Shown piece after piece: positions 4,732-51,871 of a DNA stretch of 51,871 nt. The position numbers and the translations under genes are program-made. The notes below the pieces were generated by a model. That model saw only the letters and a program-made list of their open reading frames with translations. It had not been told where the DNA came from and searched no databases. Every line of letters begins with the position of its first letter. Position 1 is the stretch's first letter. This stretch comes from Octopus bimaculoides (taxonomy: Eukaryota): NCBI RefSeq assembly GCF_001194135.2, contig NC_068996.1, positions 49,672,827 through 49,724,697 of the forward strand, given 5' to 3'.

Positions 4732-5445
4732 NNNNNNNNNNNNNNNNNNNNNNNNNNNNNNNNNNNNNNNNNNNNNNNNNNNNNNNNNNNNNNNNNNNNN
4801 NNNNNNNNNNNNNNNNNNNNNNNNNNNNNNNNNNNNNNNNNNNNNNNNNNNNNNNNNNNNNNNNNNNNNNNNNNNNNNNNNNNNNNNNNNNNNNNNNNNN
4901 NNNNNNNNNNNNNNNNNNNNNNNNNNNNNNNNNNNNNNNNNNNNNNNNNNNNNNNNNNNNNNNNNNNNNNNNNNNNNNNNNNNNNNNNNNNNNNNNNNNN
5001 NNNNNNNNNNNNNNNNNNNNNNNNNNNNNNNNNNNNNNNNNNNNNNNNNNNNNNNNNNNNNNNNNNNNNNNNNNNNNNNNNNNNNNNNNNNNNNNNNNNN
5101 NNNNNNNNNNNNNNNNNNNNNNNNNNNNNNNNNNNNNNNNNNNNNNNNNNNNNNNNNNNNNNNNNNNNNNNNNNNNNNNNNNNNNNNNNNNNNNNNNNNN
5201 NNNNNNNNNNNNNNNNNNNNNNNNNNNNNNNNNNNNNNNNNNNNNNNNNNNNNNNNNNNNNNNNNNNNNNNNNNNNNNNNNNNNNNNNNNNNNNNNNNNN
5301 NNNNNNNNNNNNNNNNNNNNNNNNNNNNNNNNNNNNNNNNNNNNNNNNNNNNNNNNNNNNNNNNNNNNNNNNNNNNNNNNNNNNNNNNNNNNNNNNNNNN
5401 NNNNNNNNNNNNNNNNNNNNNNNNNNNNNNNNNNNNNNNNNNNNN
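4732..5445. other. Assembly gap (others: 575-754, 6717-6855, 13299-13405, 14872-14970, 32190-32199)
   Basis: Runs of N, mostly flanked by simple repeats. Confidence 1.
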
Positions 5446-6205: not shown

Positions 6206-9128
6206 GGAAAGTAATGTCAAACCCAGAAGTAGAATATCATAACTACGTTTTGTGTGTAGGAGACAATGACAAAAGATCTGATAGATGCATTAAGAACAGA
6301 ATATTATAAGTTCTAGTCACTGATAGACAGAATATTTTAAAGGAGGAAGGGAGAGGGAGAGAGAGGGTGAAAGGCAGAAAGAGTGAAAGTGATTTGTTTT
6401 CTTTACAATATAAGTGAAAGGTTTCATATTAAACACTAGCTTAAAAGCTGCACTTCATGTAGAACTTTAAGTTAGCTCCTGCAGAAGGCTAACTGGGCTT
6501 GCAGCCCAAAACTAAAGAGAGCTAAATAGCATTACTACAATGCATGTATAATGACTATATGTCCCGGTAGTGTTAGGTCAGAGGTTAAGGACAGATGAGA
6601 ATTAATTCTGTAATGCAATCATTCTATTTTCCAGTCCCAAGTTGAATTCCAACCGTTGGCTAATTTGTCCTAAAGTTCTTATCTCAACAAAGTGAATGTC
6701 ATTTGCCCCCCCCCCCNNNNNNNNNNNNNNNNNNNNNNNNNNNNNNNNNNNNNNNNNNNNNNNNNNNNNNNNNNNNNNNNNNNNNNNNNNNNNNNNNNNN
6801 NNNNNNNNNNNNNNNNNNNNNNNNNNNNNNNNNNNNNNNNNNNNNNNNNNNNNNNACCACTTGATCACTGATGTCATCTGACAAACGCCAACCAAGATGG
6901 TGTGAATCAGCCAAGCTTTACCTGCTAAAAATAGCAACCCAAATGCTTTTTAAATTGGATCCCAATGCTGGATGTTCAAGAACCAAATGAAGGCCAAATT
7001 TTTGATCCCAGGATCATCCTGATTCCAAAAAGGTATAATATATCTATGTAGAGCAAATGTAAGCTGAGATACAGGGGTCCCAAATGGACAGATGGAATTT
7101 TGCTATTATTATTATTGTTATAGATGAAATTCAAAGCCACAAGTCACTAAAATTTGATCCTATTACAGTAATGTCAAATCTGTTCAAATGCAGGACTCAG
7201 GATGCATTAATTCAAAAGGGTCATGGATAAAACTCATGCTTTCTACAATGGTTGCTTGAAAAAAATTTGCTGTATCTTTTGGCCCCCAACAGTGTCAAAT
7301 GGGGAAGGAGTTGCACAATAAAACTAGTTTCATTAACATGGTCCCCAGAATGAATATCAATGATCCAGATGTCACAAATATAATGTAGTTTATGACATTG
7401 AGCAACTGGATCAAACATTACTACTCAATGTATGTTTCACTGTTATGGTTGCTTGGAGCTCTGAACTGGATGTTCTGTGTGACATTGGATGCTTGAACAG
7501 AATGGATCATCGAGGGAACACTTTATTGCATTAAGTTACAGAGAATTAAAGTCAAGAGTTGGTAGATGGCAAGACATTTTATAAGTGTTTGGAAAGGGAA
7601 ACAAAGAAATCAATTAACAGAGAAAGAAAAAGAGGGACTAAGGAACAAGTGAAAGACAAAGAAGACAAAGAGAGAATAAAGGGAGACAAAAGATAGAAGA
7701 AAAAAAGGAGAAAGTTGGACAACCATAAAAGGGATAAATAAAAATATAACATGGAAAGTGAAATAAATATATAAATAAATACACCCAAGTGATAGAGAAA
7801 GAGAGACAGACAAGAAAGAATAGGAAGAAAGAGAAAATGAGAGGGAGGGAAATTATAAAAAAGGGGACTCAATTGTGAGACAGTAACATATTGAATGAAA
7901 CCAAAGCAATTAGAAAATGAATGTAACCACAAATGTATACTTAAATAAGAGTAGATCATGACCGCATGTATGACAGGTGTCCAAAGTTCATTTTGTATAT
8001 TTCAAAAGATTAATTATAAACACCTTTTCTAGGTACAAAAGTATACATTCATACAGACACATAGCTACATGCTGGTGCGCACACATACACACAAACCAAT
8101 ATACAAACATACACATGGACTTAAATATTGAGGTAGTAAGGTAGATAAACACAATTAGGCTTGAAACACATTTACATGGAGCTCAAAATATAGATTATGC
8201 AACGTTTTATCTTAACAGTCATTTCCATTTCCTTAAGTGCACGAAAGGTGTTCAACAAGAGACAAGTCCAGATGAAAGTAAGTTATACTTCCCTTTTCAG
8301 GAGTGGTAAATGTGAGTTGTCTAGTAGTGTTTGCAAATATAAGGACTGGAAGAAGTGGGTGGAAATAGTGAAAGAGAACGGGTGGTTAAGTGATGAGATG
8401 AGACGAAGATACCACCTGACAAAGACCATGTATAAAAAAGATGAAGTTAATAGCTGGCAGAAGGAATAGTGTTGTCAATTAACCTAGTGGAGTAAAGAGG
8501 ATCAAAGTAGTTGTTCTCAGACAATGAAACAGTTCACATCAGAGGCAAAAAACACATAGATGTGGGGGAAAATTAAGCAGTAGGAGGAAACAAGTATGAT
8601 AAGAAAAAAGAATGAGGAGAAAATATGATTTTACATAAAGAGCAAAGGTGATATAGAATTTATGTTTGCCAGTGATAACATCAGAGAATCAATTAAGAGG
8701 TCTTATTTTGGTGAGACTCTAACCTGATGGGAACATGAAGTTTGTGACTAGACTATAATGTTATAACACAAGCAATGCTCCTTTAAAGGACAGAGTTGGA
8801 AGGGTCAACACTTAGGGGCTTTCCTACTCCTAAGAGATTTGAGCTCAGTCAGTATTTTAAGTTGGTTGATACAATTGTTTACGCCAGAGGTAAAAGCTGG
8901 TATGTACACATTTAAATAATGTGCACATACTGAGTTGGAAAACCTTTCAAATTTTTAAATGCAAAATGGCTTTTCAACACAATATTTACATGCTGTTATT
9001 TGTAGCTCATGTGCTTCGAAATATTCCATTCCAAAAAAAGAATTACTGTTCTCTCAAAAGTTTACAAAATTTTTACGACATCAAGAAGAAAAATTATCAA
9101 AAGCAAAAAGTAGAAAATCATAACTTAC

Positions 9129-9800
9129 CTTGTACATTGGGTGTGATGTTTAAAGGGTCAGATGATGTGGCATGCAAAGGTATGTGGCTTCTAGGAATCT
9201 TATTTGTATGCACTGTTTGAAGATGACCTCTGTGGTCATCATTATGGACATTTGAATTGCTCCTAGTAGCACCAACTTTTGCAAAGTTACCAAGCATTTG
9301 CATATGAGGATCTGAAGAGCTGCTTTCTAAATTCAGTCCAGCAGTTAATTGTTCAGATGCTAGTTTATCATTCCAGCCATTTAAATGATTGGTGCTTCCA
9401 ATATTCATGTGTTGCTGTACTGGTAGTGGTGGTGGTGGTGGTGGTGGTGGAAGAACTTCTTCTGCACCAACTCTGTTTGTGTATGTATTAGGTAGAGCTT
9501 GGAAATTTTGCCTATTCTGAGAAATACTGTGCGCAAACCGTTCCTCAAGAAAACTCAACCAATCTCGAAACTGGAACCGTTCGTCACTGGTAATGGCAGG
9601 ATGTATGAGAGAGAAAGATAGCAACTGACGACTTTCTTCAATGTGCACTCTGTTGTCAATAGAGTACGACAAAACTTGAGGAATTATTTGTAAGTAAGCC
9701 CTTTTTGCATCAGCATTTCCAGATCGAAGTAATGGTAAATGAGATAGAAGTTGCTTCACAGCCGTTTCTTTTGATTCAGAACATAACTGGCTGATGTAAT
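9129..9800 (-). CDS. SAMD4: Smaug/SAMD4 homologue, coding exon 2 (672 nt, phase 1-1)
   Basis: Pyrimidine tract and CAG acceptor at 9802-9801 joins exon 1 in frame (G+AT=D): DYISQLCSESKETAVKQLLSHLPLLRSGNADAKRAYLQIIPQVLSYSIDNRVHIEESRQLLSFSLIHPA, matching SAMD4A [21 protein letters not shown]...HIEESRQLLSYALIHPA. Later LNGW and HIPLHATSS motifs also match. Donor CAAG/GTAAGT at 9128. Confidence 0.95.
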
Positions 9801-10027
9801 CTGAAAAACAGAAAAAACAAAACGGTAAAGAACAAGTTACTGATGTGGTGGGCTACATGAAAATTAAAATGGAGTTATTGCTAGAACAGCCAGGCCAAAA
9901 AGGGCCCATAGAAGAATATCTCAAAAGTTAGGAATATCTTAATGAAAGCTAAAGAAATAAGGATCAAGATGGACACCATGAGGTTTCTGGTGATACCCTT
10001 AACTGTTTTCTTCCATCCATACTTCAA

Positions 10028-13295: not shown

Positions 13296-13484
13296 TATNN
13301 NNNNNNNNNNNNNNNNNNNNNNNNNNNNNNNNNNNNNNNNNNNNNNNNNNNNNNNNNNNNNNNNNNNNNNNNNNNNNNNNNNNNNNNNNNNNNNNNNNNN
13401 NNNNNATAGGTAAAGCAAATTTTAGAGGTAATACTTGATAATTGCAAGCACCTGTATATGCCAGATAGTGGCCGGGGTGAAAGA

Positions 13485-14537: not shown

Positions 14538-15687
14538 CAAATCCAAGCTATATTCTACCCATTTCAATTGACTGGCAGGAAGTTGATCACCATGACACCA
14601 TGACACTAACCTCTACATGCTAGAAATAAACTTCAACATTTAGGAAATAGTAACAAAATCTCACTTGCATTACACCCAGTCTTACACAAAAAAAAAAGAA
14701 AGATGGACAGGGTAACAAGGACTACATTATCCGTAGTGTCTGGAAAAAGAATCTCAGGACTGGGGTCATGGTTGGAATGCCTATGATCATAGGTCATCTG
14801 GATAAGTAAGAGAAAGAGCAATAGGATGGATTGGTGTCTGTCTATCTATCTATATATATATATATATATATNNNNNNNNNNNNNNNNNNNNNNNNNNNNN
14901 NNNNNNNNNNNNNNNNNNNNNNNNNNNNNNNNNNNNNNNNNNNNNNNNNNNNNNNNNNNNNNNNNNNNNNNATATATATATATATATATATACAGCTAGT
15001 TATTTTACAACCCTAAAGCAACAATTGAAAGCAAAGTGAATAGGAATCAAACACCTAACCAAGAAGATCAATCAAAACTAATTAATGTAAGGCTATTTAG
15101 TGCAGTCAGGTTTAATGAAGTAAAGCTTAATGCTAAGGAATTATAAGGGGAAAAATTCTCTCTTCTTAGACATGGCTGTGTGGTTAAGTTCTTTCACAAT
15201 TTGTCTCAGGTCCAGTTGCACTCTGCAGCATCTAAGTAATCAAAACCTTATGAGGGAATTTGGCAGATGGAAACTGCAGGAAGCCTGTTGTATATGGATG
15301 TGAACTCACACACAAACATGCAAAAATGTTCATATTTCATGTTTGTCACTTGGAGCAAAGCAGTGAGTTGAACTCATTGTTTATATTAAAACTGGTCAGT
15401 CTGCTCTTTCAAACACCTATGGAATAAAGAAATTCCTTTACTTGAAAAAACAGGTAAGGTTTGGCAACAGGAAGAGCATCCAGCCCTAAAATCCTGCCTT
15501 GAGTAACTTGAGCCTACACCCATACTAGCATGGGGGGGGGGGGGGAATAACCCTTTAGAATTCAGATTATTCTGTCAAATGTAATGTTTATTTATTCACA
15601 TTGTTTTCAATTAATGAAGCTTCATATCACAGCTTCAAGATTTCAATGATCTGATTGTTTACTTTTAGAATGAGAATGCAGGTTAGA

Positions 15688-17438: not shown

Positions 17439-17799
17439 GGGGAGGGAGCTTAACAGCAATTTTTAGCAAATTTCAAAGAGAAGGGGAGATAATTTTATAA
17501 ATTAAATTTCTCAAAATTTATTTTCATGCTTAGAGTAAAAGAGTTTGATCTTTGCAGACAAGGGACAAATGTGATACGTTTTAAAAGTCTATTTCATCTC
17601 ATCAGGATAGTGTAGCCTAACCAAGCTTGTTTAGCTAAGTTGACAAAGAATTTTTTCAGATATACAAAGAGCATTACAATGATTTTTTTTGATTAGCATA
17701 ATTTCCATGACTAAAAGAAAGAAAGAAAAAATCAAACAGGCCAATGACAAAGTCAAGGGGCAACAGGATTATTTCCATATTTATTCTTGATATATTTAT

Positions 17800-17970
17800 C
17801 AGAGTAAGCACATAAATGCGAAACAAAGTGGGGAAAAAATAGTACTCAAATACCAGAGGTAGAGTAATATGCTTTATCAAAAAGCAGCAAAAATATTACA
17901 AAAACTGTTACTCAGAGTTTCACGTTGACATTCATCAAAACTGTCTGACAAATGTGAAACTGAGTAACAC
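17800..17970. mobile_element. Decayed, reverse-oriented copy of the double-hammerhead foldback element
   Basis: Reverse complement of the unique tail (gtactcaaataccagaggtagagtaatatgc) followed by aaaactgttactcagagtttcacg and a truncated second arm. Confidence 0.7.
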
Positions 17971-18017: not shown

Positions 18018-18708
18018 CAGATTCAGAGTCAAATATGCTGCTCGCTGTTGTGTACATTACAAGAGAATAACTCTTCTCTTTTATGATGGCAATGTGTTCA
18101 TAACATACTAGGCTCATAGGCACACAAAATTCTGGGACACCAGTGTTTCAACATGTGTCTCATCAGCCAGAAGTAGCAGCAGATCTAATCCAAGACAAAG
18201 TTACTGGCTTTGTTTAGACTTTCAGCAAACAAATTGTTTGCTCAGTGACGCTTTATTATCTGCCAACCTATAAAAAATATTTATTTGCACTGTGTACAGC
18301 AAGATCTGGAACAATTATTCACATGTTTATTCTTAACATGTCCGGCAGATTCAAACACAAAATATGCTGGTCACTGTAGTGTGTGTCACAGGAGAATAAC
18401 CCCTCTCACTTTTATAACAACAGTATGTTCCACACACTTGGTTCATTCAAGCACAACATTCTGAGACACTAGTGTTTTGGCATAGGGTTAGTCAGCTGGA
18501 AGCAGCACCCTTACTTTTGAGCCTAAACAAGACTCTGGCTTTGTTTATAATTTCAGTGAACAAGCTGTTTACTGACCAGTGCTGATACATGCTAACTATA
18601 AAAAAAAATTTTAAATAAATCATCTTTACTGTGTGCAGTGAGATCTGAAAATGATGATTAGCATATTTGCATTCAATTTGCATATTTTACATATTCTGCC
18701 TGGACATA
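18018..18708. mobile_element. Two adjacent diverged copies (~326-bp offset) of an HHR-bearing element; second copy (18337-18708) bounded by TTAA and imperfect TIRs
   Basis: ggcagattc at 18018 and 18344 with colinear homology. TTAA-catgtccggcaga...tctgcctggacata-TTAA. Second HHR (18459-18502) is decayed but keeps palindromic ACACTAGTGT-C. Confidence 0.65.
18130..18172 (-). ncRNA. Minimal type I hammerhead ribozyme, sense to Smaug intron 1
   Basis: UUCUGG-CUGAUGA-GAC ACAU GUU-GAA-ACAC UG GUGU-C^CCAGAA: perfect 6-bp stem I, canonical core, 3-bp stem II (G.U closing), 4-bp stem III, GUC site; predicted cut 18136/18135. Confidence 0.85.
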
Positions 18709-18712
18709 TTAA

Positions 18713-18915
18713 CCCATTAAGTTCCACTGTCCTATAAATAGGACACTAAATGAGAATATTAAATAAGCTATATCACATTGTCTCAGTGTCCTATTTATAG
18801 GACACCGAGTATTTCCATTTCTACTTGAAGTAAAGGAGTTTTAATAATTATTTTTTTTCATTTTAACCTATTTTCAATCCTCTGTAAAAATTTAAGTACT
18901 CTGGGACTTAATGGG
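18713..18915. mobile_element. piggyBac-like MITE
   Basis: TTAA at both flanks; TIR CCCATTAAGT(T/C)CCA; internal inverted tgtcctataaataggaca motifs. Confidence 0.8.
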
Positions 18916-19299
18916 TTAAGAATAAATAAGCAAGCAATCATTTCAGATCTTATTGTACATGGTGAAAATATTTTTTTTTTAATATTGAATATCAGTCACA
19001 AGAAATTCTGAACTGAAATTTACTAAAAGAGAATCTAAAATGACATTTTCCGATATATCCTTTTAACCCTTGCTAGCACTGACAACAGACATTAGATGAT
19101 GATGTAATTTGAGGGCAATTTCGCTGCCATTTTAGCAAGTCAGATGACCACAAGAAAGCCTTTCTAATTGATTCAATGATTCCAGAATTGCTTAGAATCA
19201 TACATAAAACTTGAAATATAACCATCTTACAGTATGGATAGTAAGATGCACTGCAAATTAAATAATTTATGGGACATGAATAATCTTTCTTTCTTTTTT

Positions 19300-20915: not shown

Positions 20916-21394
20916 ACAGGTTTAAATTTAGATCGCTTTCAAACAGATTTTGTGTCTTAGATCCAAGGGTGGTCTTAGTCAGGTTTGTATCAAGAGGGTT
21001 AATTCCATTACAAGTTTTCTCTCCAACATCAATACAATATAGCACCAATACACGCACGCCCATTCTCAAATTAAGTCGCATGTTCATACCATGCACAGTT
21101 ATTTCTCCTGCATACATCAGCTGTTTTTCATTCATTTGTGCTTTGTCTCTCTATCTTCTAATTAACTTTAAATGTCCAATGAATTGTACTTGCACTGATT
21201 TCTTGTTAGGCACTGCACCGTTTCTGCATTTAGTTGCCCATGTCCCCATACCGTGCAATATCATCAGCTCTGTCAACACTAAACTACAATTCTACACAAA
21301 AATACTGAATGGCCTTTTAATTTCTAATATGATAGGTTGTCAAATAATGCATTATTCAAATTAAATAACTCATTTTATCCAATTGCAATGCTGA

Positions 21395-21596
21395 AGGACT
21401 CCTGCTTGTGTAGCATGGTGCAGAGTCCTGTTGCCAGAGATAGGGTCTTCCAACAGCCACCCTCTTGACCCAGGGCAGCACTACCTCCTCTAGGCACTTG
21501 ATGTAAGCCTCTGTGTTGAATCTGAGGTTGTGTGGGAAGATGAATGGAAGCTTAACATCACCATCACAAGTAATCACTCCAAACACCATATAAGGA
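21395..21596 (-). mobile_element. Internal fragment of the same maT transposase family
   Basis: MVFGVITCDGDVKLPFIFPHNLRFNTEAYIKCLEEVVLPWVKRVAVGRPYLWQQDSAPC aligns to 37.25-37.40 kb. Confidence 0.85.
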
Positions 21597-21811
21597 ATTG
21601 TAAAGGAAGAAGCAGCGCAAGGAGAGACCCAACAACAACTTCTTCCACCACTGAGACAACAAATGCTCTCCACCCCACCCTCAGACACACCTACCCCCAC
21701 CCTCGTGCCTGTTTGCAATTGAACTTGTGGATCCCTCAAGTCACATTCGACTAAACATAGTCACAAGTTCACACAAGCGCAAATCATTCTCGAACCCGAG
21801 AGACTGCCCAC

Positions 21812-22719: not shown

Positions 22720-23235
22720 AGGGCTCTGCTAAGCCATCAATCCACTTTGCCAGGGTCTTCTTTGTGAGGGTGTCATGTTTCTGCTCCATAGAGGAGAATG
22801 GAGAAGACCAATGCATTGTAGATGCGGAGCTTTGTCTTCTGGGAGACAGAACAATGGTGCCACCAATGCTTCCACAAAATGATGAGAAGAACATTAAATA
22901 GTACCATCATATTTCCAACCTCATAGCCATCCACAGCAAGAACTGGTACAGACACATCCTCTGCCACCTGCCAAATCATCTTATCAGAAGAGCCTTATTC
23001 TCATTTGATGCAGCAGCTGCAGGTTGGAAGAGGCCCTATGGCAGACTCCGTGCCATATAAGCTGGACATGATTAAAGAAGATCTTGATGTCATCTTGGAG
23101 GATGCTGAGTGGCTGGCACAGGACTGCCAGTGATAGGAAGCACTGGTGTACCTGGTCAGCTCTACACACAATGACGCTTCTAGGACCACTAACCTGGGAT
23201 GACCCCAAGTCCCATCAAGTAAGAGCATGAAGCAA
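22720..23235 (-). mobile_element. RTE-clade LINE 3' fragment
   Basis: SVSQKTKLRIYNALVFSILLYGAET is a typical RTE RT C-terminal motif; multiple stops. Confidence 0.7.
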
Positions 23236-26164: not shown

Positions 26165-26575
26165 TTCAACCATCTATCCATCTTCTCTACCTTCTAGAGG
26201 GGTCATGGGTGGGGAGAGTCCTCAGGTACCTCTTCCGTTGGGTCCTTTCAGAAGTAACCATCATTAGACTTTCCTGCTGGGTTTCCAAACACGAACAACT
26301 GAACTATGGATATTCTCCAACCATCTTATTCCTAGTTTATCCCCAAGTCTCCTGCCAGTTGTGGGGCTAGTCCTCTGGCACTTTCTCCATAGGGTCCTAC
26401 CAGAAACAACCATCATCACACTTTCCAGCTGGATTCCAAAACGTGACCAACTTAGACTATGGATATTATCCGACCATTTCATCCTTGGTTTACCCCAACA
26501 TCTCCTCTCAGCTGGTTTGACTTGAAGAATCCGTCTTGCAATTCTTCCCTGCAACATTCTAATCACTTGTTTGAA
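26165..26575 (-). mobile_element. RTE-clade LINE 3' fragment
   Basis: IARRILQVKPAERRCWGKPRMKWSDNI resembles the RTE C-terminus (G.R..GRP...W.D.I). Confidence 0.6.
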
Positions 26576-29642: not shown

Positions 29643-32600
29643 CCTCAGTGGAATTTGAACTTGAAACACAAGTGCCAATTTCCTACCTTACGGTATGGTA
29701 TATTCCTAAATTGATGTCACTATGATTCTTGTCAAACCACTTTATGTAATTATGTTAAGGATCCCAGTACACCAGTAAATTTCCCCCTTCATAACATTCC
29801 AAGCAAACATTAATATTTGTTTTAATTCAAATGCTATGCAATTTCTCAACATAACTAACTCAGTGGTTTCATTTTCAAGCACGGACATGTTTAGTCATAG
29901 GACTAAAATAATTTGAAATATTAATTTAAGGTTGGCCAACCAGTATGTTGTACTAGTGTTTTTTTTTTCTCTCTCTTTTTTTATCCCCTCCCTACCAGTT
30001 TTTGGTATGTAGGTATTTAATGTCTTGCAGAAGACAAACTACTTAAATAGTAGAACTATGATGTCTGTCCTCACAAGACAGTTCAACAAAATCTTAAAAA
30101 GTAGAGCTTAGCATCAAATTTAAGAAGCATAAATTAAGTCATTTTGATTGTATCCAGAGTTTGTTGACACTAGCTAAAGCTGGTTTAAATCAACAAGATG
30201 ACAAAATTTCCTTTACAGAAAAAAAAAGAAAAAAAAAAAAAAAAAAAAAAAAAAAAGAAGACTTGTTTATATACTTACATCTTACATATACAAATATACC
30301 AACATGTAGTGGGAAACGTGTAAATTAAATAAGTTATCAAAGTCTTTTTGTTTCAATCTTATTTGCACACAACAATTTTAAAACTAGCATCTATTCAACA
30401 ATAATTTACCATCTTGTGAAGAAGCTACCTGATTTTGTTAAACCAATCGTTTCATATGAATTAAATTCAAGAGTTAACAATATCTTAGTCCCAAAGTTGT
30501 TTCCCCGTTCCAAGCTACATGAATGGGCATACCTTTCATGTAATATTTTTGGTGGATCTCCAGCTGTCACAGTGTACTACTAGTGTTCTTGGCAAAGCAT
30601 GACAAATATTTTTTGATAGTAGAAAGGCACCAGATCATGTGTTTTGCTAACGAGAATTTACAAAGGAACTTTGAAATTGCAATAAAAAAAAAAAAAATCT
30701 CCATGACTTACTGAAGCACAATTAGTTTTGTTTGTTGGTGTGAGGAGGAAAGGTAATAATATCCAAAGCTCTGTTTTTAGGTTCTTTTTAAATGGGTGAG
30801 ACTAATGGAATTCTAATAAATTTTTAATACGTCCACAGCTCAGTGGATATGGAGTAGATATAAGCAAAGAAAAATATTCAATTTGAATGAGGTTTTCAGA
30901 GAAGGTAGTGAAATAAAGAATAGAACTAAGTTCCTTGAATATCTTCAGGCTTTTGTGGTTCACAAGCTGTCGTGGAATACAATTCAACAACAGGTTGATA
31001 TTTGCAGAGAGAAATTAAAAAATGAAAGAGAGAGAGAGGGGCTTGCTTAATATATATGTGCAGATAATATCATTGGTACTGTCTGAGAGTTTCCCATGGT
31101 TAACAATGCAATTTCGATGACAATTCCCATGACAAAACTGCATTGACTGAATGTGTTCCTAATGTGCACAAATTAGAGAATAACTAGCTTCCACAAGGAT
31201 GCACAATCATATTGAAAGATCTGAAACTAGTGTGTGTGTGTGTGTGTGTGTGTGAATCATCCACTTATCCGTGTGGGAAGGGACGATGAATAGGTGTCCT
31301 ATGAGACACTGATTATGTTTTCATGTGGAAACAATGTAGGTGTACACACACACACGTAAACCTTTCATTTAGTCATGTACATGAAATGAAATGTAACATT
31401 TGGAGCAGTAGGCAGTAATACTTGATGCAAAGTCCACATTCTAATGATTTGGTCTACATTGTCTTTTTAATTTGCTTCACACACCACCATGTCCTCAACA
31501 CTTACTACAAGCTCTGAAATTACAATTTTCCTCACTAGCTGTTAAACAAGGTATGATTAACCAAATATTTCTAATTCTTAACTATTATGTCCTTCAATTA
31601 AGAAAAAGAAAAAAAAACTTTAACCTTTCATTTTATGAATTTGTAGTATTGTAGGTATGTCGAAAAGTTGACTCTTTTTGAGAGACCATATTCCTTATGA
31701 AATACTTCAATTAGTTTTTGACGAAAAGAAAAGACTTTGGAAAGATTTAGTAAGTTCTTTATTACTAAAGCTGCTGTTTAAAACATAACATGTTCTTATA
31801 TATAATTAAAATAAGCTTTAAGTTAAATATGATCACTTTATTATGGACAGTTTACGACCACAGAAGCAAGGGATTGGTGGTCTCAAATAAAATAATTATA
31901 AGAAGGTTGAAAAGTGTTCAGATGACAAATGAAATGCTTCTAAATAAAACATCTGGATTCCAAAAACTTCAGTAGTTAAGGAAAGCATAAAGCAGTAGTT
32001 TGATTGAGCCTAACAGAAATTCAAAAGCTGACATGAAACCACCTATCATACTATGAAAATTTTATTTGCCTTTTAAAAATGAAAGTACTGAATAGAATAA
32101 CGCTTCGTATTTCTTTTGACTTTATTCTCCAGGTTCAAATTTTGGTCAACTTTGCTTTTCACCTTTTTGGGACTGAGGGGGGGGAAGAANNNNNNNNNNT
32201 GGATGTGTTTACAGTATTTCTCCTAGATTTTTGCATTCTGAGTTCAAATCCATGAGCTCACGGAAAAAGGGTGGAAGCACATCCCCTAAAATTTTGTGGT
32301 AGGCAGTGAAAATGCTTTTGAACATCCTCCTGAAAAACTTAATTGCCAAAAGGAACAAGCCTCGAAACAGTTTTGAACTTACTTGAAACATTACTTTCCC
32401 ATTATTGGATTGATCTGATTTTATTGATGTACAAATATAATAATAATTATTATTATACCCGTGTTTGTTTTGTTATGACTGGGGGAAAAAAAAAAAGTCA
32501 ACTTAGATTATAAAAACATTTTGGACTTGGGTTTGTGTCCTCTAAGCAAATTTTGTTCCCGCACTTATGTTGAAATTCTATCCTGCCCTACACGGGTGGT

Positions 32601-36551: not shown

Positions 36552-37781
36552 ATAGGGTGCGAGGGGTAAATTGTCGCCATTTTATATTTTTAATTTCGTG
36601 TATGCACAATGTTTGCTTTTTATTTTGTCACCTACACAGTATGGTAGGGTCTGTTGGGCACCGTCTGTGAGAAAAACAGCACTATGACGCAATTCACTCT
36701 GCCAGAAATTTGAAAATGACACTGTATTTCTTGGCATTCGCGCCAGAAGCTCCAATACTAACATTTCACAGTGCGGAGGATTCGGAAAGAGCTGGATGAG
36801 TCTAATGGTGATTACGAAGGTATGGCAGCTCGGACAACTCACTCTGATCATTCTAAGAAAAGAACTCCTGAATTTCTTGGTGAGATCTAGGCCATGATTG
36901 ACAACGATCCCTCCAAGTCAATCAGGTCCATTGACAAGGACATGGAAGTGTCTCAGTTTCTTATCTGGCAGGTAGCACATGAAAACATTCAGTATTCCTC
37001 ATACAAGATGAGAAAGGGCCAATTTTTATCCCAAGCTATCAAGGACAAGAGGAAAGACTATGCTACAAATCTTCTGAACAAGTTCAAGCATCCCCTACAA
37101 CCGAACATGCTTTCGTTTTTCTCAAACAAGAAACATTTCTGCCAGGATCAGATGATGAACACACAGAACAACTGTTGGCTTGCTGTGTACCCAAAACATG
37201 TACCGAGAGTGATAGAAATCAAACATCCAGTCAACATCATGGTGTTTGGAATGATCACTAGTTATGGTGACGTTATGACTCCATTCATCTTCCCACATGG
37301 CCTCAGACTCAACATGGAGGCCTACATCAAATGTTTAGAGGGGGTAGTGCTGCCCTAGGTGGGCAACAGGACTCTGCACCATGCTACACAAGCAGGAGAA
37401 CCCAGTCATGGCTGCCAGACAATTTCTACAACCACATCACCCCTAACATCTGGCCACCTAACTTCCCAGACTGCAACCCCCTTGATTATTATGTGTGGGG
37501 CACAGTTGAGCGAGAGACCAACAAAACTCCTTGTAACACCAAAGATGAACTGAAGGCAAGGATTATGGCAGCATTCACCAACTTAAAGGAGACCATCCAG
37601 AAGAGTGGCAGGAGATTCTTAAGTTGTCTGGAGGTCATGGTTGAAACCAATGGCGATTCCATTGAAAAAATTTACTCTTTAGTATTTCAAGATATTTTTA
37701 TGTAATTTTGGTAAATATATCAGTTAAAATGAGATGTCAGTTATATTTTCATTTTTGTGTAATTTAGATGACAATATACCT
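36552..37781 (+). pseudogene. Decayed Tc1/mariner-superfamily transposon, DD37D (maT-type) transposase
   Basis: QQDSAP...WPPNFPDCNPLDY with 37 residues between the 2nd and 3rd Asp. First Asp reads N (FSNKK). Stop/deletion at ~37358. Degenerate TIRs (gagg ggtaaattgtcgccat / agatgacaatatacctc). Confidence 0.85.
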
Positions 37782-40619: not shown

Positions 40620-42140
40620 GTTATCACAACATCTCCCCTTTTGAGACTGACTTCCACTAGAAGTGAATAAATATTTTTTTTCTTTCGCACAACATCTCCC
40701 TTTTAGAGATTTACTTCCCTCAAGCTTAATATTTTTTTTTATTTTGGAACTACCTCTAACAATTCTGTTTTCTTTTTCTTGTACTGGTACACCTTGGTTT
40801 CATGATTTCCTGCAGAGTTGGCACATCAAAAATATCATAAAGAACTTCCATGGGTACTTCTTTTCTTGTAACCCTTTCTTCAGCAAACCTTTTCTGCTGA
40901 TTCATGTGTCTTTTATGTTCCCATTTTGAACCTTTCCCCACATACGTCATTTTACCAATCTGTTTTATTATTTCACTATCTTCCCAATCTCCTTTTTCTA
41001 TTTCTGTAAAACTCTGAAAAACACCTTATCACCAGTTTCTAAATACTTGGTCATATTTTTAGTTTTTTTCCCCAGTTTTTGTTTTTCTTCCAAGTAATAA
41101 TTTGTCAAAAACTGACTTAATTTTTCTTGCAAACAACAGTTCCGCAGGCGACATGCCTGAAAGGGTATTTAGGTTTAGCGTTACACAGTAAACTCTCAGG
41201 AATTGTTGCAATGCTACATCATCCACTACCTCATTTCTGGATTTCCTTGGTGTCTTTTTGAACATGTCCACAAAGCGTTCAGCTAGTTTGTATGATCTTG
41301 GATAATAAGGAGTGATATATTCAATTGAGAACATCTTGCAAAATTTCTTAAATTCACTCGCAGTAAATTGTGTACCGTTATGGAGATTATGGTGTCTAGA
41401 ACACCATGCCTTGCAAAAAGTCCTCGTGGAAAATCCATTGTTACCGTGGAGGTTGGTTTTCTACATTTACACATTTCTGACCGTTTTGTAAAGCCAACTA
41501 CCACTATTAGATAATATGATCCATTTAATGGTCCTGCAAAGTTTATGTGTAGCCTAGTCCATGGAATATCAGTCTTGGGCCAAGGTTGAAATTTTCTAGG
41601 AGGTCATTTTACTGCAGGATTTTCCCAACTTCTCAATATCTAGATCCATTTTCAGCCAGTAAACACAACTCCTCGTAAGTGACTTCATCTTAGAAATTCC
41701 TGGATTCCAGCATGGAATTCCTTTAACATCTCATTTTGTAGTTAGACAGGCATTACTACCCTCTGTGCATACATAAGCACATTATTACATATTGAATACA
41801 AGTTCGAAACTGTATTTCATCCAGCAACACATTTTTTTTTTATTTGTTTCTTCTGATCTCACTATTTTTCCATTTTCATGATAAACTCATCCATCTCTGC
41901 TTCAATTTTTATTTCCTTTAATGTGATAGGCAATTCATTCACAATGTTGCACAATATACCTTTTATATCATTTTCAGCTCTTAACGCTGCTAGCACAGTG
42001 TCTTCTAGTATTTTGGCATTAACCTTGACAAACCATCTGTATGTCCCAATTTTTCAGATGGCAAATACTCCATCTTGAAATCTTAATTCAGAAGGATTGT
42101 ACTCCAGCGCTGCAATCTGTTAGCTGTATAATACATTTTT
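40620..42140 (-). pseudogene. Decayed Ty3/Gypsy LTR retrotransposon pol (RNase H end, integrase, 3' region, PPT)
   Basis: Reading across stops/frameshifts: YTANRLQRWSTILLN.DFKMEYLP..KLGHTDGLSRL; GHPG-type zinc finger region; WTRLHINFAGPLNG; SDNGTQF-like region; AERFVDMFK; polypurine tract + TGTTG at ~40704-40690. Confidence 0.8.
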
Positions 42141-42146
42141 AAATCT

Positions 42147-42544
42147 CTAAACAACAGTAGTATTATTCCCTTCATGGGACTGTCACATTAAATTGACAGC
42201 ATACAACTACTTCAACGTATCACTACTGCAAGAAATGTATTATTTCTAATTTTGAAATCAGTGAATGTATTTCACTAGAATTATAATATGTTTACAAGAG
42301 CTTGACAGGCATCTTCGACTAGCAGGACATGCTACTCCAGACTGATGACGAGCAAAGACTCAGAAACATGTCTCTGGATGCAGGCTTAGCTAGGTGGAGG
42401 TACTTGTCTCCCCCTTGCAAACATAAGTACACAGGAAATGTGTCAAGGCCGACAGGAAGCGGTGCAGCTTCCTAGGGCTAACCAACAGTAGTATTATTCC
42501 CTTCAGGGGACTGTCACATTAAGTTGACAGCATATAACTACTTC
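42147..42544 (+). mobile_element. Retrozyme-like non-autonomous element (331-bp unit plus 67-bp terminal direct repeat) containing the HHR
   Basis: 42147-42213 repeats at 42478-42544 (4 mismatches), period 331; HHR internal; no ORF. Confidence 0.7.
42336..42378 (+). ncRNA. Minimal type I hammerhead ribozyme (canonical core, GUC site)
   Basis: UCCAGA-CUGAUGA-C GAG CAAAGA CUC A-GAA-ACAUGU-C^UCUGGA: 6-bp stem I, 3-bp stem II with C.A closing mismatch, palindromic stem III ACAUGU; predicted cut 42372/42373. Confidence 0.85.
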
Positions 42545-43156
42545 TAAAACTTTAGGTTCAATAAGGTTTGCACAGCACCTCACAGACCCTATCCACTCTA
42601 CTGACATGATCCAAAGACAAAACCAGGGCAAGATATTCAGTGCCAACGTGAGTTGCAGGCTCAGGAATGTGGGAGCACCACCATATCAATTCCAACGCCA
42701 TTCCCTGCACATCTGGTTTTATATCAAAATGACCTTCTCCTAGAGACATGCTTTAGAAAAAAACTGAGGAGTGCCACACTCCCAGTAACCTTTCACCATA
42801 CCAGACACCAACCCAAAATTTCTGAAGGCATGTACTATTTCTAGATAGTCATCGAACCTACACTTAGTTCATCCATCACTTTAATAGGTCATGCTTTTAG
42901 TACTAGGCGACCTGGCCATTCACGAAACCTCGCAAATGACCTTACAGACATACACTCCAAGACGTGGCAATAGTTTAACAGATGTCTGACCACTAAGTAA
43001 GAATTTCTAGGGAGAGCTGAAAAGCAGGAGACCTTTAGAGAAGAAACCCACCCACCCCTCATTCAAGTATTTCAGCCCTTAACACCTTACAAAGTAAAAG
43101 GGCCAGACTGTACCTGGTCATGATTCCTAGATATTTCCCTGCTTCAACATTTTGTT

Positions 43157-49469: not shown

Positions 49470-49660
49470 AAAGTGAGAAGATACATTGCAGAACTGTTAT
49501 TTTAATGAGTTATATCTTTTATCACCTGAAGAGACACATCTACACCATTGGATGCTCCTAAACCAGTTGTTAAGTTTCCCATCCGTGAGTGATCAATGCT
49601 AGATGGATTGAAACAAATGTAATGATTAATAAAAATTCTCATATCTTCCATTTCATTAAC
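49470..49660 (+). repeat. ~190-bp repeat, also at 51195-51375
   Basis: Shared tgttattttaa...tcacctgaagagacacatctaca...atcaatgctagat. Confidence 0.75.
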
Positions 49661-50094
49661 CAAATATAAATGTGTGTGTGTGTATTAATATCAAACAATG
49701 AGAATGAGTGCTCAACACTGCAATGGACAAAAATTCTTTATGGTTTATGGCTACCATTGGTTTCATGTAAGTGATAAATCCCTTAACAATTATCAAGCCT
49801 GCAACATGGAACATTGGTGTTCATCTCCATCTTGGATTAAAACAATAAAATCACATAAGATCATGATAAAATATTGTGAGATTTTAGGTAAACAAAACAA
49901 ATATCAGGGGCAACAACTTTTGAATTATTATCTCCCTTGCCTCAAATTTAGGTTAAATTTGATTTGAACTGTTCAAATATTTGCTAACATAAAATTTTTA
50001 TAAACTTTCAAGAGAACATGAAATAATAATTTTTTTCTTTTAATAGATTTCAAAGCACACATATTTTGCTATAAATAATAGCATATAAATATCA

Positions 50095-51085: not shown

Positions 51086-51373
51086 TATATGCATAAATGT
51101 TTGTGTGTGTATGTGTGTGTGTGCGGTAAGCTTGCTTTGTAATCCTAAAATCCCAGGTTGTGGTTAATTTACTACTTTTGTATACACATACCGAAAAGAA
51201 ATCTTGCAGAAGAGATGTTATTTTAACAAGATACATCTTGTAATCACCTGAAGAGACACATCTACATCGACGGATACACCTAAACTAGATGTTCAGTATC
51301 CCACCCATGAGGAATCAATGCTAGATTGGTCAAAACAATTGAAGTGATCAATAAACATTCTCTCATTAATCAA

Positions 51374-51602
51374 ATACAGGCTTGGCTGGGTGGGGGTGCT
51401 TGTCTCCCCCTCGTAAACATAAGGACATAGGAAATGTGTCACGGCCGACAGGAAGCGGTGCAGCTTCCTGGGGCTAAATAGCAGTTGTATGATTCCCTTA
51501 TTGGGACTGTCACGTTAAGTTGACGGTATACAACTACTTTATCATATCACTACTGCTTAAGTCTCTCCAAGAGATTTAGAAATGTATCGTTTCTAATTTT
51601 TG
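51374..51602 (+). mobile_element. Second, HHR-less copy of the 42 kb retrozyme-like family
   Basis: Aligns to 42378-42544 then 42214-42254 (e.g. ggaaatgtgtca..gccgacaggaagcggtgcagcttcct; gggactgtcac). Confidence 0.8.
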
Positions 51603-51635
51603 TAATTATATATATTAGATATAGATATATATATA

Positions 51636-51850
51636 CTTTATTTAAAAGCAGCAGAAATATAACAAAAGACTCTTACTCGGAGTTTCACGTTCCCGTTCAT
51701 CGGAAAACTGTCCGATGAACAGGAATGTGAAACTCCGAGTAACAGTCTTTTGTTATATTTCTGCTGCTTTTAAATAAAGCATATTACTCTACCTCTGGTA
51801 TTTGAGTACTCTTATTTCCACCTTGTTGCACATTTATGTGCTTACTCTGG
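51636..51850. mobile_element. Second copy of the double-hammerhead foldback element
   Basis: Near-identical to 767-993. Plus arm ACUGU-CCGAUGA-ACA GGAA UGU-GAA-ACUC C GAGU-A^ACAGU (51707-51746). Confidence 0.75.
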
Positions 51851-51871
51851 TATATATATATATATATATAT

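Follow-up and report, generated by a model that had tools for sequence, protein, structure and literature searches.

The segment at 42147-42544 of a 51,871-nt stretch of the Octopus bimaculoides genome (contig NC_068996.1; this whole stretch is called the window here) is best explained, at a probability that we put at roughly 0.7, as an old, dead copy of a short non-coding family of non-LTR retrozymes that bears a hammerhead ribozyme (HHR) and is Penelope-dependent. The original prediction had called the segment retrozyme-like. This identity is supported by a 331-nt non-coding, low-GC unit, a type-I HHR, a length greater than one unit and a second copy in another phase. The original prediction had also read this arrangement as the footprint of a circular RNA, which does not stand as a unique inference, because Penelope-type copying of a linear multimer leaves an identical footprint. 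Copying around an RNA circle is thus one of two mechanisms that fit, and is not uniquely supported. The coordinates of the unit, of its copies and of the elements discussed with them are collected in Table 1, in which the family represented at 42147-42544 is called family 1.

Table 1. Family-1 copies, parts of the hammerhead motif and other repeats discussed in the text; positions are those of the window unless a locus is named.
Feature	Position	Strand	Remarks
Family-1 copy 1	42147..42544	+	398 nt; 1.2 head-to-tail units of a 331-nt HHR repeat
67-nt terminal redundancy	42478..42544	+	repeat of 42147-42213; identity 63/67
Predicted long closing helix	42299..42408	+	~42299-42341 pairs with 42373-42408; continues helix I beyond a UAC/U internal loop
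Type-I hammerhead motif	42336..42378	+	direct reading and descriptor; helix I open
Helix I, 5' strand	42336-42341	+	TCCAGA, 6 bp
HHR core	42342-42348	+	CTGATGA
Helix II and loop 2	42349-42362	+	CGAG-CAAAGA-CTCA; C·A plus 3 bp, loop CAAAGA
HHR core	42363-42365	+	GAA
Helix III	42366-42371	+	ACATGT palindrome; A-U pair and palindromic CAUG loop
C17	42372	+	C, completing GUC
Helix I, 3' strand	42373-42378	+	TCTGGA
Ty3/Gypsy pol relic	40819..42130	-	end of RNase H, integrase H2C2 and core; frameshifted, 5'-truncated at left edge of copy 1
Family-1 copy 2	51375..51603 (about)	+	unit positions ~232-331, then 1-~110; 86% identical, 20-nt indel
Unrelated ~190-nt repeat family	49475-49663, 51190-51377	n/a	78% identity; z = 52 against each other
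Family-2 dimer	18024..18708	-	two head-to-tail 329-nt HHR units; descriptor, Rfam; 3' end adjoins (TA)n
MITE, ~211 nt	18709-18919	n/a	separates the family-2 dimer from its inverted stub
Inverted partial family-2 copy, 62 nt	18920..18981	+	upstream of the dimer; z = 6.7
Argonauta hians element	L003 15646-16205	-	1.5-mer of a 355-nt unit; GCA_054771915.1, BAAFZT010000056.1

The 331-nt unit and its copies

Copy 1 is laid out as one unit (42147-42477) followed by its first 67 nt again. From start to start, the two direct repeats are spaced by exactly 331 nt, in agreement with the period that had been proposed. The redundancy had been described as exact; this proved incorrect, as its two copies differ at four positions (42151, 42175, 42192 and 42204). 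The unit has a GC content of 41%, and its longest frame on either strand is 50 codons from stop to stop, showing that it is non-coding, as had been claimed. We found no LTR-like structure in copy 1 and no clear target-site duplication in the flanks examined. The AT content of the flanking DNA is 77% and 70%, compared to 63% for the whole window. Copy 1 is a decayed copy, with a drift of 3-7%, and since it carries a single HHR it cannot release a unit-length RNA by itself.

On its left side, copy 1 adjoins a relic of a Ty3/Gypsy pol gene that lies on the opposite strand. Homology to a related pol query in tblastn runs from 42130 to 40819 and begins at residue 88, exactly at the junction; the proposed position of copy 1 at the truncation point of the relic is therefore correct. 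We considered an empty-site comparison in which the relic would resume beyond the family-1 insertion, and rejected it in view of this same start of the BLASTP and tblastn homology. No RT, protease or gag of the relic was detected elsewhere in the window by BLASTP or by tblastn with the related pol. The nearest named relatives of the relic are those of Argonauta hians and of O. bimaculoides. Another O. bimaculoides locus has SINE-like repeats in common with the window, at 70-83% identity, and SINE copies (GGCGCAGGAGTGGCTGTG...) are found throughout the window.

A sister copy had been announced at 51.4 kb, and the alignment confirms it (copy 2), with 86% identity over 167 ungapped nt. The two copies are ~9 kb apart, in different phases and with unrelated flanks. 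The hammerhead segment is absent from copy 2, which begins 5-10 nt 3' of the point of HHR cleavage, next to the 3' end of a ~190-nt repeat unrelated to it, and which passes at its own 3' end into a TA-rich microsatellite. Copy 2 continues across both ends of copy 1 (42147 and 42544) and its own ends are internal to copy 1. The ends of neither copy are thus termini of the element, and fixed ends common to the copies, the outcome that the original prediction had set against itself, are not seen in the two copies available, each of which runs through the ends of the other. Because copy 2 is continuous through both ends of copy 1, the sequences require a source template that repeated every 331 nt, either as a circle or as units joined head to tail, and not an element with fixed ends. 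With this period and with copy 2 unbroken at the junction, an element of kb size is excluded as the immediate template.

Transitions account for 20 of the 30 substitutions between the two copies. As had been noted, copy 2 keeps CpG where copy 1 has TG or CA, which is the case at three sites, while the reverse is seen at one site. Since the CpG observed/expected ratio of the window is 0.38, CpG decay is plausible.

The ~190-nt repeat that precedes copy 2 is present twice in the window. The copy at 49475-49663 ends in (TG)n, and the copy at 51190-51377 is fused by its 3' end to copy 2. A MAFFT alignment hinted that this repeat might be a diverged HHR half of the family-1 unit, which was rejected by comparison with shuffles (z = -0.8 and -0.1). 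A possible third, very decayed family-1 piece lies at 42780-42843 and corresponds to unit positions 37-102, with 67% identity over 66 nt; the match has an E value of 0.006 in a small search space and a z of 4.6, and the identity of this piece is not established.

Family 1 has two copies in the 52-kb window, which contains no family-1 array with at least two HHRs. No family-1 copy was found in eight cephalopod or related loci (168 kb) that were sampled through relatives of the Gypsy protein; this sampling yielded one new HHR element, in Argonauta. Those matches of a relaxed HHR descriptor (5/6 helix I) that fell inside integrase genes were rejected as false positives. The 26-nt block conserved between the family-1 copies gave no exact match in metagenome and viral contigs, and protein-space searches gave no match either with the 50-aa frame that crosses the family-1 HHR or with a 1166-aa concatenation of the six frames of both copies.

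Elsewhere in the window, a long open frame of 244 codons with a proline-rich middle (9121-9852, minus strand) looks like a host coding exon. We take it, by eye, to resemble Smaug/SAMD4, and Pfam gave no match for it. If it is a host exon, a host gene would be close to the hammerhead elements or would contain them. Judged by eye as well, the frames at 36891-37705 (plus strand) and 21359-21760 (minus strand) resemble relics of Tc1/mariner-type transposases, and the fragments at 22776-22994 and 26267-26575 (minus strand) resemble the C-terminus of a LINE RT. Pfam returned no transposase or RT match for these frames, and the RT-like fragment matched DUF6451 below threshold only. Runs of N mark assembly gaps at 575-754, 4732-5445, 6717-6855, 13299-13405, 14872-14971 and 32190-32199.

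The hammerhead motif and the predicted fold of the unit

Direct reading of the motif at 42336-42378 shows that all invariant core nucleotides are present, with the predicted cleavage site at 42372/42373, and the parts that had been described (a 6-bp stem I, CUGAUGA, a palindromic ACAUGU stem III and GUC) are there as claimed. With its 6-bp helix I and the four positions of its helix II, the motif agrees with the published canonical form of metazoan type-I HHRs, in which helix I has 6 bp, helix II 4 bp and helix III 1-2 bp closed by a palindromic loop of 2-4 nt (PMC4209133). At its base, helix II has a C·A mismatch (positions 10.1/11.1). Both CAAAGA in loop 2 and the UAC that directly precedes helix I are similar to the corresponding parts (CAAAAA and UUAC) of the Hammerhead_HH9 consensus. 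We searched the window with a descriptor that requires six of six helix I pairs, CUGANGA, at least three of the four helix II pairs, GAA, and A15.1...U16.1 followed by H17. Two matches were obtained in the real window, at 42336-42378 (plus strand) and 18130-18172 (minus strand), and none on either strand of 400 windows simulated by a first-order Markov model.

The motif had been called canonical, which is too strong. Rfam reported no hammerhead at the family-1 locus, whether the whole window was searched at the gathering score or a 1.7-kb and a 91-nt slice at E<=10. As a control, the family-2 HHR of the window (18130-18172, minus strand) reached 28.8 bits against Hammerhead_1 (RF00163) in a like search, with a local E of 9.9e-6; this score is below the gathering threshold of 34 bits, which the family-1 HHR does not reach either. 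The lone family-1 hammerhead fold is predicted at -2.6 kcal/mol, compared to -12.4 kcal/mol for a competing fold in which the core AUG pairs with the CAU of helix III. Taken by itself, the 76-nt HHR region folds no better than its shuffles (z = -0.26). In view of the C·A mismatch, the weak lone fold and the silence of Rfam, the motif is real but sub-canonical, and the folding predictions suggest that copy 1 is probably inactive as a ribozyme. The mismatch and the competing AUG/CAU pairing would lead to poor or no cleavage by this copy.

The ACAUGU palindrome, modelled as a bare intermolecular duplex, is predicted to form a 6-bp helix III at -4.6 kcal/mol, which fits a ribozyme that works only as a dimer. 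Metazoan type-I HHRs with a small helix III are inactive as monomers and active as tandem pairs (PMC4209133).

The fold of the entire unit was calculated for the circular 331-nt monomer opened at the cleavage site. Its minimum free energy is -94.9 kcal/mol, while 200 dinucleotide shuffles gave -71.9 +/- 5.0 kcal/mol (z = -4.55). About 61% of its bases are predicted to be paired, and the structure contains an imperfect rod of ~35 bp that closes on helix I. For the complementary strand of the circular monomer, the folding z is -3.7. An A-to-G difference in copy 2 leaves a CUGUCA/UGACAG hairpin paired, as U·G. Known retrozyme circles are stable and highly self-paired (PMC7229834).

Other hammerhead repeats of octopods

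The second descriptor match in the window belongs to another repeat, family 2, whose two head-to-tail units are ~72-80% alike. Its HHR at 18172->18130 is intact, and the one at about 18503->18461 is decayed. Families 1 and 2 have a UGCUAC-helix I-CUGAUGA module in common; a test for homology between them outside the HHR gave none (z = 1.4). The MITE that parts the family-2 dimer from the inverted stub carries ~25-nt terminal inverted repeats, complementary at 84%, and, internally, a perfect hairpin of 20 nt.

A third repeat came from a 20.9-kb locus of Argonauta hians (L003) that was chosen solely for its Gypsy integrase. The redundancy of this 1.5-mer is 171 nt, with 95% identity. It contains one HHR-like motif recognised by the strict descriptor (L003 15912->15867), with a weak match to Hammerhead_HH9 (16.3 bits). 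Its 3' end adjoins (TA)n, and 28 nt from the start of the unit recur in perfect inverted form 9 nt upstream of the element. The family-2 dimer and the Argonauta 1.5-mer show that octopods carry several HHR repeat families of such design. In all three octopod hammerheads the 10.1/11.1 pair is non-Watson-Crick (C·A, G·U and U·U), so the mismatch of family 1, for which CpG decay of a C-G pair had been suggested, may be a trait of the lineage and not decay.

Three HHR partial tandems end at (TA)n on their 3' side (family-1 copy 2, the dimer of family 2 and the Argonauta element), and an inverted upstream stub accompanies two of the elements, family 2 and Argonauta. Since a (TA)>=5 run is no more than 12 nt away from only 3.1% of the window positions, three such junctions are unlikely to have arisen by chance, as far as a post hoc test can tell. 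Partial tandems, an inverted truncated upstream copy and microsatellite or AT-rich targets are structural signatures of Penelope-like elements (PLEs; PMC8557442, PMC11167929).

A foldback element of ~240 nt, made of 74-nt arms and a tail of ~85 nt and with (TA)n on both sides, occurs at 51631-51871, 17790-17969 (minus strand) and 762-1014. Two of these three copies follow a hammerhead element immediately on its 3' side, with order and orientation the same in both cases, and the third comes after an assembly gap.

Relation to known elements, origin and significance

Family 1 closely follows the description of the metazoan non-LTR retrozymes of coral, mussel and axolotl (PMC7229834). Like them, it has a non-coding unit of a few hundred nt with a GC content below 45%, a type-I HHR, a head-to-tail logic and a strongly self-paired predicted circle, and it lacks LTR, PBS and PPT. 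Among the features that define retrozymes are a type-I HHR core (CUGANGA, GAAA, UH) with helices I-III, which is found at 42336-42378 with the caveat of the C·A pair; a low-GC, non-coding unit of 150-450 nt devoid of LTR, PBS and PPT, here of 331 nt and 41% GC; and a stable self-paired circular monomer, which is predicted for family 1 by the folding z and the extent of pairing given above. Retrozymes are further marked by tandems of two or more head-to-tail units in which two HHRs flank a monomer, by self-cleavage with accumulation of linear and circular RNAs of unit length, and by many dispersed or arrayed genomic copies. In contrast to the known retrozymes, the family-1 locus comprises 1.2 units, a single HHR and a 10.1/11.1 mismatch. 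Retrozyme families are recognised to include monomeric derivatives (2026 preprint).

The newt satellite 2 and the axolotl Rtz_331 (HHR_Amex1) have a unit of 330-331 nt and, as family 1, a 1-bp helix III with a palindromic tetraloop; a helix III of the HHR_Amex1 type implies activity solely as a double hammerhead (PMC7229834). The equal unit length of Rtz_331 and family 1, which are likened here by description, is probably a coincidence. Moreover, the amphibian repeats form huge arrays of about 10^5 motifs, whereas octopus family 1 consists of short dispersed fragments. Plant LTR retrozymes (PMC4918200) are also non-autonomous and HHR-delimited, and mobility via a circular RNA has been proposed for them. 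However, they carry type-III HHRs in LTRs of ~350 bp, together with PBS, PPT and 4-bp target-site duplications, exceed 55% in GC content and depend on Ty3/Gypsy elements for their mobilisation. None of these features was seen for family 1, whose HHR is of type I and which has neither LTRs nor a target-site duplication. The Gypsy relic that neighbours copy 1 is on the other strand and simply truncated.

The pseudo-LTRs of PLEs (PMC4209133, PMC8557442, PMC11167929) resemble the octopod elements in their partial tandems, their short terminal 'tail', their AT-rich or microsatellite targets and the position of the HHR inside the repeat, and the PLE-like inverted truncated upstream copy is seen in family 2 and in Argonauta. 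Copy 1 might then be a fragment of an autonomous PLE, i.e. a solo or truncated pseudo-LTR with the hammerhead of the PLE itself, and not a member of a separate non-autonomous family. Pseudo-LTRs do carry type-I HHRs, PLEs insert as partial tandems with short tails and are often 5'-truncated (PMC4209133, PMC8557442, PMC11167929), retrozymes and pseudo-LTRs are sequence relatives in Xenopus, and Penelope families are present in octopus genomes (PMC13282606). We nevertheless consider such an origin improbable. The period of a PLE partial tandem is the full length of the element, which is kb-sized and encodes RT with or without GIY-YIG, whereas the family-1 period is 331 nt; with this period and with copy 2 contiguous across the junction, no ORF fits the element. 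The family-1 HHR is of canonical form, with a 6-bp helix I, a helix II of four positions and a helix III made of A-U and CAUG, in contrast to the minimal HHR of PLEs, which has a helix II of 7-8 bp, a helix I of 4-5 bp and no helix III. In addition, Pfam detected no PLE RT or EN, and no GIY-YIG signal, in concatenated ORF fragments covering roughly the first 26 kb of the window, in a scan whose sensitivity is low, as known relics were missed too.

Copy 1 might also be a scrap of HHR satellite DNA that was moved or left behind by unequal crossing-over, deletion or segmental duplication, with no retrotransposition involved. The HHR repeats of newt and axolotl have the behaviour of satellites (PMC7229834), and this origin would be consistent with the lack of a target-site duplication and of poly(A) at copy 1, with its location at the breakpoint of a truncated Gypsy relic and with the divergence of the family-2 units, which is that of an old array. 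It becomes unlikely in view of two dispersed family-1 fragments that differ in phase and flanks, and of sister elements that end precisely at (TA)n with inverted upstream stubs, as is typical of PLE-type integration. We give even less weight to the view that the likeness to an HHR is incidental, or that the motif died long ago in the whole family, the unit being a common SINE-like repeat, or one of unknown type, with RNA that never self-cleaves. The lack of an Rfam match, the C·A pair at 10.1/11.1, the sequestration of the core AUG in the MFE fold and the poor folding of the 76-nt HHR region are in line with this view, but the descriptor is silent in all 400 simulated windows, the loop nucleotides are canonical, the Rfam-recognised HHR of family 2 has the same UGCUAC-helix I-CUGAUGA module and the unit as a whole folds far better than its shuffles.

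The preferred reading, a dead copy from a Penelope-dependent retrozyme family, agrees with the argument that metazoan non-LTR retrozymes represent non-autonomous PLE derivatives, of which dispersed monomeric derivatives are common (2026 preprint). The mechanism that we propose for this family draws on the present sequences for its first step and on published work in other animals for the following ones. Master loci with at least two head-to-tail units would be transcribed as multimers. The HHRs of neighbouring units, each with a 1-bp helix III and a CAUG loop, would pair as a double hammerhead in which ACAUGU/ACAUGU forms a 6-bp helix III, and would cut after GUC. The freed 331-nt RNAs would fold into a long, stable and mostly paired structure and might be circularised by a host tRNA-type ligase. 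At AT-rich or (TA)n DNA that has been nicked, a PLE reverse transcriptase/endonuclease would then copy a template of more than one unit, be it the circle or a multimer left uncut, with variable start and stop points. The resulting insertions would vary in phase and length, as exemplified by the 1.2-mer at 42147-42544 and the fragment in another phase at 51.4 kb. PLEs routinely insert as partial tandems, and the copying of multimeric linear transcripts with an internal start and an early stop has been proposed for them (PMC11167929, PMC8557442). Copy 1 spans an uncut (or religated) HHR site, which is permitted both by copying of a circle and by copying of a linear multimer.

A broader reading, which we put forward tentatively and hold at somewhat less than even odds, is that octopods possess several sequence-unrelated HHR retrozyme families of the same size (329, 331 and 355 nt) that still yield circular RNAs and integrate by the Penelope route, leaving phase-variable partial tandems at (TA)n with an inverted upstream stub.

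Cephalopod genomes are very rich in repeats and contain active retroelements, and retrozymes are, to our knowledge, the sole natural ribozyme route to small circular RNAs in animals. In the literature searched, we found no description of cephalopod retrozymes: no article paired retrozymes with squid, and pairings with octopus were incidental. To this extent the statement that no cephalopod retrozyme has been described holds. It is softened by the giant-squid genome paper, in which 235 Rfam Hammerhead_1 hits are tabulated without analysis, and by the report of retrozymes across many invertebrate phyla, molluscs included (PMC7229834). Family 1 adds an octopod member to a known class of animal elements, the non-LTR retrozymes; the class is the expected one, the copy is decayed and no new mechanism is involved. 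The (TA)n junctions and inverted stubs of the HHR elements constitute testable support, at the sequence level, for Penelope-type integration. If the reading of several families that use the Penelope route is true, it would provide the first description of cephalopod retrozymes, and the first invertebrate insertion-site evidence for the hypothesis that retrozymes are non-autonomous PLEs, which according to its authors has been tested in vertebrates only (2026 preprint).
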